This document shows, in pieces, positions 28,901 to 31,900 of a stretch of DNA of 64,000 bases. Positions within the stretch are counted from its first letter, which is position 1, and the number at the start of each line of letters is the position of its first letter. Source of the DNA: Malacoraja senta (lineage: Eukaryota); assembly GCA_038087875.1 (NCBI GenBank), contig CM075977.1, forward strand, positions 298,034,001-298,098,000. Reading direction: 5' to 3'. The position numbers were made by a program, and so were the translations under genes. Below the pieces are notes generated by a model. The model searched no databases, was not told the DNA's origin, and saw only the letters and a list, made by a program, of their open reading frames with translations.

Positions 28901-31900
28901 GACAAGGTGGTCAAGTTTAGGAACTAAACATTCCAGGGTCAATGACTTTAATTAAAAAAAACATAAAATCTAAAGGACCAAGAGCAGCCCTGACAATAAC
29001 ACCTAAAATTATGTCAGTATTCTAAATTAGTTATGTAGAACTAGTACAAGTGAGAATAGTTTTCTCAGCCTCCTAACAGTAATTTGTTGCTTTATCCTGT
29101 GTTCAATGTTATGATTAGAGGAGCAAGTAAGTATGTATGCTTTAATCATCATTCACTTTAATCTCAATTAGAATAGGCAAATCAAATTATCAAAAGTAGA
29201 GGTTGAATATGAGGACTGCAGTTAAAATCAATTTGTTGGGAAAAATGTATTAGAACGAACTATTTGAGATCTAGCTTTGTGCGCGGAGTCAAAGCTAAGC
29301 AGTAATCCGAGAGTTAAAAAACCCTCTGTGGAAAAACTGAATGTAAACTGAAGATTCTTTAATAGGTTTTATGGTGAATTGGTCAAACCCAAAACAGGCT
29401 CTTAAGTTTAAAAAAGCTGATTAAATAATCTAATTTCCGGTCTATTCAAATAAATAATTAGTCATTCTCAGAAGAATAAGATTCTGCTTGCAAAGGTTAA
29501 CTAGAATTTAATTTGGGCTTCTGTTTCCACCATGCTGAAACCTGAATGTCAAAGTAAATGAACCCAACAGCTGATACAATTTTGTTTGTGCGATGTGCAA
29601 TCAGTTATACACATTTTATTTCACGTAGAATATTGCATTACATGTACTTCATATCTACTATATTGCAGGCAACTCTGGCTATCCATCCCAAAAAGTTGAA
29701 TTGTGTCTGGGAAGAGGCTATCAAATTGTAATTCCACATACCTGTGAATTCAGAATATGCAGAATTGTCATCATCCACTCTGCAAGTGTCCATTAGTGTG
29801 CTGAAGAGGCAGCCAATAGGGTCCAATGGGTGACCTACCCATCCTTCCAGATTGGTTATCGTCGTAATACCTTTGTGAAACAGCTCAGTGTTTAGGGGGA
29901 AATAATCACTTGATACCCTTAATTGGTTTAACTACTAATTCATCAAAATTATGATATTGTCAATGCAAACTTTAGTTGAGTTTAGTTTAGTGATACGGCG
30001 CGGAAACAGGCCCTTCTGCCCACCGAGTCCGCACCAACCAACGATGTCCGCACACTAACTCTATCCTTTACACACTACGGACAATTTCCAATTTTTCCAA
30101 GCTAATTAGCCTACAAACCTGTATGTCATTGGAGTGTGGGAGGAAACCGGAGCACCCGTAGAAAACCCACACATGTTAAAGTGAGAACGTTCCAACTCCA
30201 TACAGATAGCACCTGTCGTCAGGATCGAACCAGGGTCTCTAGCGATGCAAGGAGGTAACTTTACCGCTGCGCCATCGTGCCGCCCTTATCTTAATTTTAT
30301 TTTCCTGTGCATGATCAAAGTTATGACCTAAACTGGTACGGTTATGTACCATTTACCAAAATACACGATACACTGAAAGGTTTTCATTGGACTTCTTTTG
30401 TATCCATATTCATATTGTATTTGTATCGATGTAAAAGACCATCTTATCCATGTATCCATGAGAAGAAAATTCAATAACATTTCCAAAAAACTCTGGTATT
30501 TACACAATGCCCCTAATAGGATAAAATATTCTATTTGGTCACAGACCAAAAAAAAAGATTGTTGGTGAGCATTAACTCTTGTTTAAAAAGGGTTCGAAGA
30601 GTAAACCTAGCAATTATAGACCTGTTAGTTTGACGTCAGTGGTGGGCAAATTAATGGAAAGGATACTTAAAGATAATATATATAAGCATCTGGATAAGCA
30701 GGGTCTGATTAGGAACAGTCAACATGGATTTGTGCCTGGAAGGTCATGCTTGACTAATCTTCTTGAATTTTTTGAAGAGGTTACTAGGGAAATTGATGAG
30801 GGTAAAGCAGTGGATGTTGTCTATATGGACTTCAGTAAGGCCTTTGACAAGGTTCCTCATGGAAGGTTGGTTAAGAAGATTCAATTGTTGGGTATTAATG
30901 GTGGAGTAGCAAGATGGATTCAACAGTGGCTGAATGGGAGATGCCAGAGAGTAATGGTGGATGGCTGTTTGTCAGGTTGGAGGCCGGTGACTAGTGGGGT
31001 GCCTCAGGGGTCTGTGTTGGGTCCACTGTTGTTTGTCATGTACATCAATGATCTGGATGAAGGTGTGGAAAATTGGATTAGTAAGTATGCAGATGATACT
31101 AAGATAGGTGGTGTTGTGGATAATGAAGTAGATTTTCAAAGTCTACAGAGAGATTTAGGCCATTTGGAAGAGTGGGCTGAAAGATGGCAGATGGAGTTTA
31201 ATGCTGACAAATGTGAGGTGCTACATCTCGGCAGGACAAATCAAAATAGGACGTACACGGTAAATGGTAGCGAATTGAGGAATGCAGTTGAACAGAGGGA
31301 TCTAGGAATAACTGTGCATAGTTCCCTGAAGGTGGAATCTCATGTAGATAGGGTGGTAAAGAAAGCTTTTGGTGTGCTGGCCTTTATAAATCAGAGCATT
31401 GAATATAGAAGTTGGGATGTAATGTTAAAATTGTACAAGGCATTGGTGAGGCCAATTCTGGAGTATGGAGTACAATTTTGGTCGCCTAATTATAGGAAGG
31501 ATGTCAACAAAATAGAGAGAGTACAGAGGAGATTTACTAGAATGTTGCCTGGGTTTCAGCAACTAAGTTACAGAGAAAGGTTGAACAAGTTAGGTCTTTA
31601 TTCTTTGGAGCGCAGAAGGTTAAGAGGGGACTTGATAGAGGTCTTTAAAATGATGAGCGGGTTAGACAGAGTGGACGTGGATAAGCTTTTCCCATTGAGA
31701 GTAGGGAAGATTCAAACAAGGGGACATGACTTGAGAATTAAGGGACAGAAGTTTAGGGGGAACATTAGGGGGAACTTCTTTACTCAGAGAGTGGTAGCTG
31801 TGTGGAATGAGCCTCCAGTGGAAGTGGTGGAGGCAGGTTCGATGTTATCCTTTAAAAATAGATTGGATGGTTATATGGACGGGAAAGGAATGGAGGGTTA

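Follow-up and report, generated by a model that had tools for sequence, protein, structure and literature searches.

Evidence that ZSWIM6 exon 8 lost its ancestral AG acceptor in skates, and possible replacement by an in-frame site 15 nt downstream

Results

The ZSWIM6 gene in the window, the 64,000-nucleotide stretch of Malacoraja senta DNA that was analysed here, carries TG in place of AG at the exon 8 acceptor that is predicted by homology. The explanation that we favour, as modestly probable, is that the ancestral AG was lost in the skate lineage and that the acceptor moved 15 nt into exon 8. In this scheme the AG of the ancestral acceptor cacAG/AG would have been abolished in the skate lineage when the A at intron position -2 mutated to T, and the change would have become fixed rather than representing an error or a rare allele. 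Intron 7 now most likely ends 15 nt downstream at AAG/GT (29872-29871), where the replacement AG would be provided by conserved Lys-Gly codons and would already have been in frame before the change. The predicted mRNA joins QAQRK to GITTIT and would specify a protein shortened by five residues, E-L-x-H-K. Between the two sites, the gAG at 29885-84 is the weakest kind of AG and probably is mostly bypassed, although some leakage to this site, producing a frameshifted and NMD-prone transcript, is plausible. As the site that the spliceosome actually uses, we infer the downstream AAG.

Acceptor sequence of ZSWIM6 exon 8

Residues 142-845 of bichir ZSWIM6 (P0260) map collinearly onto 12 exons on the minus strand of the window, all of which keep open frames, and the best database matches all carry the name ZSWIM6. 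Judged by this sequence comparison, which is collinear from the SWIM zinc-finger exon through the exons that follow, the gene is the ZSWIM6 ortholog, in agreement with the name assigned in the first-pass annotation. Identity with ZSWIM5 was considered and was rejected on the basis of the database names, which are those of ZSWIM6.

Eleven of the 12 ZSWIM6 acceptors within the window are canonical AG, and exon 8 is the sole exception (Table 1). The minus strand reads cacTGAGctg at 29890..29881, and the intron has to end at the TG (T at 29887, G at 29886) if the conserved reading with ELFHK is to be kept. The intron is of the U2 type with the donor AAG/GTAAGT. The TG is accompanied by C at -3, a pyrimidine tract upstream, and AGs at +2 and +15 that place it within 28 nt of both. 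The first of these, the adjacent AG (29885-29884), lies in a gAG/C context, and splicing there shifts the frame by +2 and leads to a TGA at 29773-29771, a stop that is premature and precedes the last junction by a wide margin. The second, AAG/GT at 29873-29871 (AG at 29872-29871), is formed by the Lys-Gly codons, follows the short pyrimidine run ctgtttcac, and is in frame: its use removes exactly the 15 nt that comprise the ELFHK codons. Upstream of the TG, the AGs at -23, -32, -46, and -49 are all out of frame, and the AG at -84 is in frame but a TAG at 29934-29932 rules it out. Omission of exon 8 as a whole keeps the frame as its length is 144 nt. The first-pass annotation had described the TG, the phase 1 end of exon 7 (AAA G/gtaagt, at 33700), the consequences of splicing to the upstream, adjacent, and downstream AGs, the in-frame exon skip, and the canonical form of the other 11 acceptors; each of these points stood when the coordinates and frames were recomputed and the acceptors were checked across the window.

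A phase-0 donor, ATT/gtagtt, is located 33 nt downstream in intron 7 and would restore the reading frame if combined with the gAG acceptor. It was rejected as being far weaker than AAG/GTAAGT.

Table 1. Positions of features around the exon 7/8 junction of ZSWIM6 in the window
Feature	Position	Strand	Remark
ZSWIM6 exon 7, 147 nt	33700..33846	-	phase 1 at both ends; last bases CAG AGG AAA G
Intron 7 donor GT	33698..33699	-	consensus AAG/GTAAGT, U2-type
High-copy repeats, bulk of intron 7	about 29924-30250 and 30550-33200	not assigned	
Stretch with 27 nt (10 + 17) missing in the related skate of run X26	29897..29924	-	
Candidate branch point gugAu of the old acceptor	A at 29906	-	predicted from sequence only
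Candidate pyrimidine tract ttatttccccct of the old acceptor	29905-29894	-	predicted, from the bases alone
TG where other vertebrates carry the acceptor AG	29886..29887	-	
Adjacent gAG	29884..29885	-	use gives a +2 frame shift
15 nt AG CTG TTT CAC AAA G (ELFHK)	29871..29885	-	exonic with TG, intronic with AAG/GT
In-frame AAG acceptor	29871..29873	-	same junction as the annotated Rhinoraja longicauda protein
Exon 8 defined by homology, 144 nt	29742-29885	-	
Exon 8 implied by the Rhinoraja longicauda annotation, 129 nt	29742..29870	-	donor ACA G/gtatgt
TGA reached via gAG	29771..29773	-	
Exon 9	20896..21158	-	begins AA ACA after ctcgcag

Ancestral state of the acceptor

Genomic DNA has YAG at the homologous base in five other vertebrate loci (sturgeon, paddlefish, and three Logan contigs), in each case after a long pyrimidine tract. 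The junction in these outgroup loci is YAG/A, with both cAG and tAG represented, and one of them reads ctaacacAG/AA where the window has ctaaacacTG/AG. With the exon 8 peptide as the query, ~60 short genomic frames were also recovered that read through from the intron into exon 8. The residue that precedes E/D in these fragments is P, S, T, A, L, I, or V. As all of these residues fit an NNA codon, the ~60 fragments are compatible with an AG acceptor in this phase. On the evidence of these sequences, the ancestral state at the exon 8 acceptor is AG, and a simple substitution of T for A at intron position -2 would seem to account for the state in skates. Moreover, each of the five outgroup loci has AAAGG, which specifies Lys-Gly, 15 nt inside the exon, and thus an in-frame AG existed before the A-to-T change.

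The 15 nt that encode ELFHK match the sturgeon sequence at 12 of 15 positions, compared to 67 of 90 in the next 90 nt of exon 8, with the conserved E, L, H, and K still encoded by four of the five codons. The retention of these 15 nt without decay would also fit ongoing translation through use of the TG, counter to a shift to AAG, in a comparison whose power is low, given a possibly recent change and the small divergence between the two skates. When the protein collection was searched with the stop-to-stop frame that runs through exon 8, distant vertebrate fragments only were recovered and no spliced fragment of a close relative was among the matches. A 57-amino acid open reading frame just downstream of the exon 8 frame had no match in the same collection.

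The TG in genomic contigs of skates

Public sequencing runs were compared over 29300-33950. A contig from run X18, which is of the same species, spans 29513-30008 with zero differences, and this run showed none on any unique stretch, at a low depth of 3.2. The X18 sample may be that of the assembly itself, in which case the identity would count against an assembly slip yet leave room for an allele. Run X26 is from another skate that is ~2.8% diverged. Its contig covers 29300-30008 and has 20 differences, 16 of which were listed, including three inside exon 8, with no difference listed at 29827-29896. The four unlisted differences fit the repeat-covered contig end at 29924-30008. Because differences with weaker support were listed elsewhere, the TG is taken as present in that skate too. 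Thus, the contig of the same species keeps the TG at 29887-29886 and that of the ~2.8% diverged skate has no listed change there: the dinucleotide is reproducible, is common to this species and related skates, and does not stem from an error in the assembly.

The X26 skate is without 27 nt (10 + 17) within 29897-29924, a stretch that in the window contains the candidate branch point of the old acceptor and the greater part of its pyrimidine tract. As the old pyrimidine tract is missing in this skate, the old acceptor context seems dispensable. The 27-nt indel may be either a deletion in the X26 skate or an insertion in the window species.

In three skate runs the contig depths over the repeats in intron 7 sum to 10^5-10^6, and these repeats also are abundant, on both strands, in a poly(A) RNA run. 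Many runs of several organisms match 20-50% of the stretch because of these intron 7 repeats and not because of the gene. The depth over exons 7 and 8 was zero in X24, the one raw-read RNA run that was compared, and the coverage in run X1, which is labelled 'RNA?' but probably is DNA, was on repeats only.

The ZSWIM6 protein of Rhinoraja longicauda

A cluster listing included ZSWIM6 of the skate Rhinoraja longicauda as the NCBI model XP_078253429.1 (P0315), the gene for which spans 176 kb. The protein differs from the window exons at 2 residues in about 700, which marks the window species as a skate that is a close relative of R. longicauda but distinct from it, and reads ...QKQLEIFQAQRK/GITTIT..., i.e., QAQRK is joined to GITTIT, which is the exact product of splicing to AAG/GT (29872-29871). 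Among 140 family proteins that are at least 400 residues in length and that cover the ELxHK region, it is the only one without all five ELxHK residues; apart from it, the length varies only in a few seabirds, through the deletion of one residue. Exon 8 is identical to that of Rhinoraja at 43 of 44 residues and its invariant core is intact, which argues that the exon is under constraint and is being included. The model, which comes from an independent assembly and annotation of a third skate, avoids the ancestral acceptor; if Rhinoraja possessed cacAG, homology would have favoured the usual ELxHK junction. To our knowledge, automatic annotation pipelines take canonical splice sites only. As the Rhinoraja model is automatic, AAG/GT would have been chosen whether or not the cell uses this site. 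The annotation thus is strong evidence that loss of the AG is a feature of the skate lineage, and weak evidence of what the spliceosome does there. Of the readings that had been entertained initially, a lineage-specific acceptor shift is the one that the evidence favours, with the Rhinoraja protein joining exon 7 to GITTIT as expected for AAG/GT.

No solved structure of a relative was found for the ELFHK region. An AlphaFold model of the region, with a mean pLDDT of 41, gives a weak hint that ELLH may be the final turn of a long helix, just ahead of a loop; if this placement at the helix end is right, a loss of five residues would be easier to tolerate. The seabird ZSWIM6 proteins with the one-residue deletion (P0309, P0313, and P0198, two of which are named as procellariiform) have ELHR instead of ELLHR, and thus the end of this helix tolerates a change in length elsewhere too.

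In the variable tail of exon 8, the codon at 29758-29759 is GCA (Ala) in the window and GGG (Gly) in the X26 skate, and the residue is Gly in Rhinoraja longicauda. Alanine probably is the derived state in the window species. Several ZSWIM6 'isoform X2' models of birds and turtles (P0201, P0169, and P0171) are without the exon that corresponds to exon 5 in the window (37925-38107, 61 residues), which suggests an annotated exon-skipping isoform of ZSWIM6 in sauropsids.

Discussion

The choice between the candidate acceptors can be set against published properties of 3' splice sites. Cryptic 3' sites that are activated by -2A>T changes are mostly exonic, are situated a few bases downstream, and are enriched in A at -3 (Vorechovsky, 2006; PMC1636351). 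The efficiency of acceptor usage follows the order CAG>UAG>AAG>GAG (PMC11802449). Furthermore, GAG is the best tolerated AG in the AG exclusion zone between the branch point and the acceptor (PMC9284458), so the gAG at +2 belongs to the type that is prone to be passed over. Under a simple scanning rule a frameshift would be expected, as the first AG that follows the pyrimidine tract is gAG and not AAG.

Use of the TG itself, either alone or as one member of a TG/AG tandem, which is the reading that the first-pass annotation put first, would retain the full-length protein with ELFHK and would consign the gAG product to NMD. Documented TG acceptors require an AG within 28 nt and are used at levels of up to 62% (Szafranski et al., 2007; PMC2374985), and the skate TG has AGs at +2 and +15, C at -3, and a pyrimidine tract upstream. 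The 15 nt in question also are as conserved in relation to sturgeon as the rest of the exon, with E, L, H, and K kept. However, TG acceptors are never sole acceptors and act only as alternative partners of a nearby AG, human AG>TG mutants activate neighbouring AGs and not the TG, and no case of an orthologous AG was found at the known TG sites (PMC2374985), yet the orthologs in this instance carry AG. The X26 skate, moreover, is without the pyrimidine tract upstream of the TG, and the annotated protein of a related skate is without ELFHK. On balance, use of the TG is unlikely. The stronger proposition that the TG is the main and effectively constitutive 3' splice site, in an essential and strongly conserved gene, across the divergence of at least 2.8% between two skate species is very doubtful.

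It also is rather improbable that the transcript is mis-spliced, mostly to gAG with the TGA at 29773-29771 and NMD as the outcome, or through skipping of exon 8, to leave a low-output or altered ZSWIM6. Although gAG is first in line after the pyrimidine tract and skipping of the 144-nt exon stays in frame, GAG is the least efficient acceptor context. In addition, all 12 exons are open, there are only 2 amino acid differences from a skate of a different genus, and the core of exon 8 is intact; constraint of this type would be unexpected over 2.8% divergence for a skipped exon or for a gene whose transcripts are bound for NMD. Finally, it has become very unlikely that the T reflects an assembly error of one base or an allele that is rare or private to the sequenced individual, two of the readings that the first-pass annotation had entertained: an allele would be compatible with X18 if that run is from the assembly's sample, and the X18 depth is only 3.2, but the same-species contig is identical, the contig of the ~2.8% diverged species has no difference at the site, and the independent assembly of a third skate gave rise to a protein model that avoids the acceptor.

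The favoured shift to AAG/GT resembles the cryptic exonic 3' sites in DBASS3 (Vorechovsky, 2006; PMC1636351) in the A>T change at -2, the AG shortly into the exon, and the A at -3. The ancestral AG is destroyed at the homologous base, and a pre-existing in-frame AG is available at +15. Whereas the DBASS3 entries are human disease alleles, the skate change would be lineage-fixed, in frame, and apparently tolerated as normal gene structure, and use of AAG in the skate is deduced from the annotation of a relative. The TG-AG tandems (Szafranski et al., 2007; PMC2374985) share with the skate site a GT...TG intron, AGs within 28 nt, and the U2 type. In contrast to those tandems, for which no orthologous AG was found, the orthologs of the skate site carry AG, with YAG in five vertebrate loci and the TG seemingly restricted to skates, and the skate site is known from the genome only. 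The spacing between TG and AG in the skate is 2 nt, which is outside the spacings of 3 and 4-36 nt covered by the Szafranski screen. Intron-boundary sliding and NAGNAG-type turnover similarly change a few codons in frame and leave the protein otherwise nearly unchanged; unlike a NAGNAG-type choice between two intact AGs, the skate shift is of 15 nt and would follow destruction of the old AG.

As a case of splice-site turnover, the event seems to be of an ordinary type. If the shift is true, it provides a clean natural case of a gene that survived the loss of an invariant splice signal, with a replacement AG ready in frame in the Lys-Gly codons and at a cost of five residues. For annotators, skate ZSWIM6 models differ from those of all other vertebrates at the exon 7/8 junction for a real genomic reason. 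Use of the TG, if it takes place, would be of much greater interest for research on splicing mechanisms. Were the TG constitutive, it would contradict the published rule that TG is the minor partner of a nearby AG, and would offer a natural system in which to study the acceptance of U at -2 during the second step of splicing.

Several introns of the gene harbour open frames on the minus strand with common motifs (8486-8872, 36407-36670, 42728-42904, and 53135-53311). By eye, these recurring intronic frames look like fragments of one retrotransposon family. A further minus-strand open frame, of 129 residues with FDPTRERWSSYSMRAAFYFESMGITTDQRKKALLCSSMSPETFALLQNLL, is located at 226-612, downstream of the last ZSWIM6 exon in the window, and resembles by eye a retroelement Gag-like domain.
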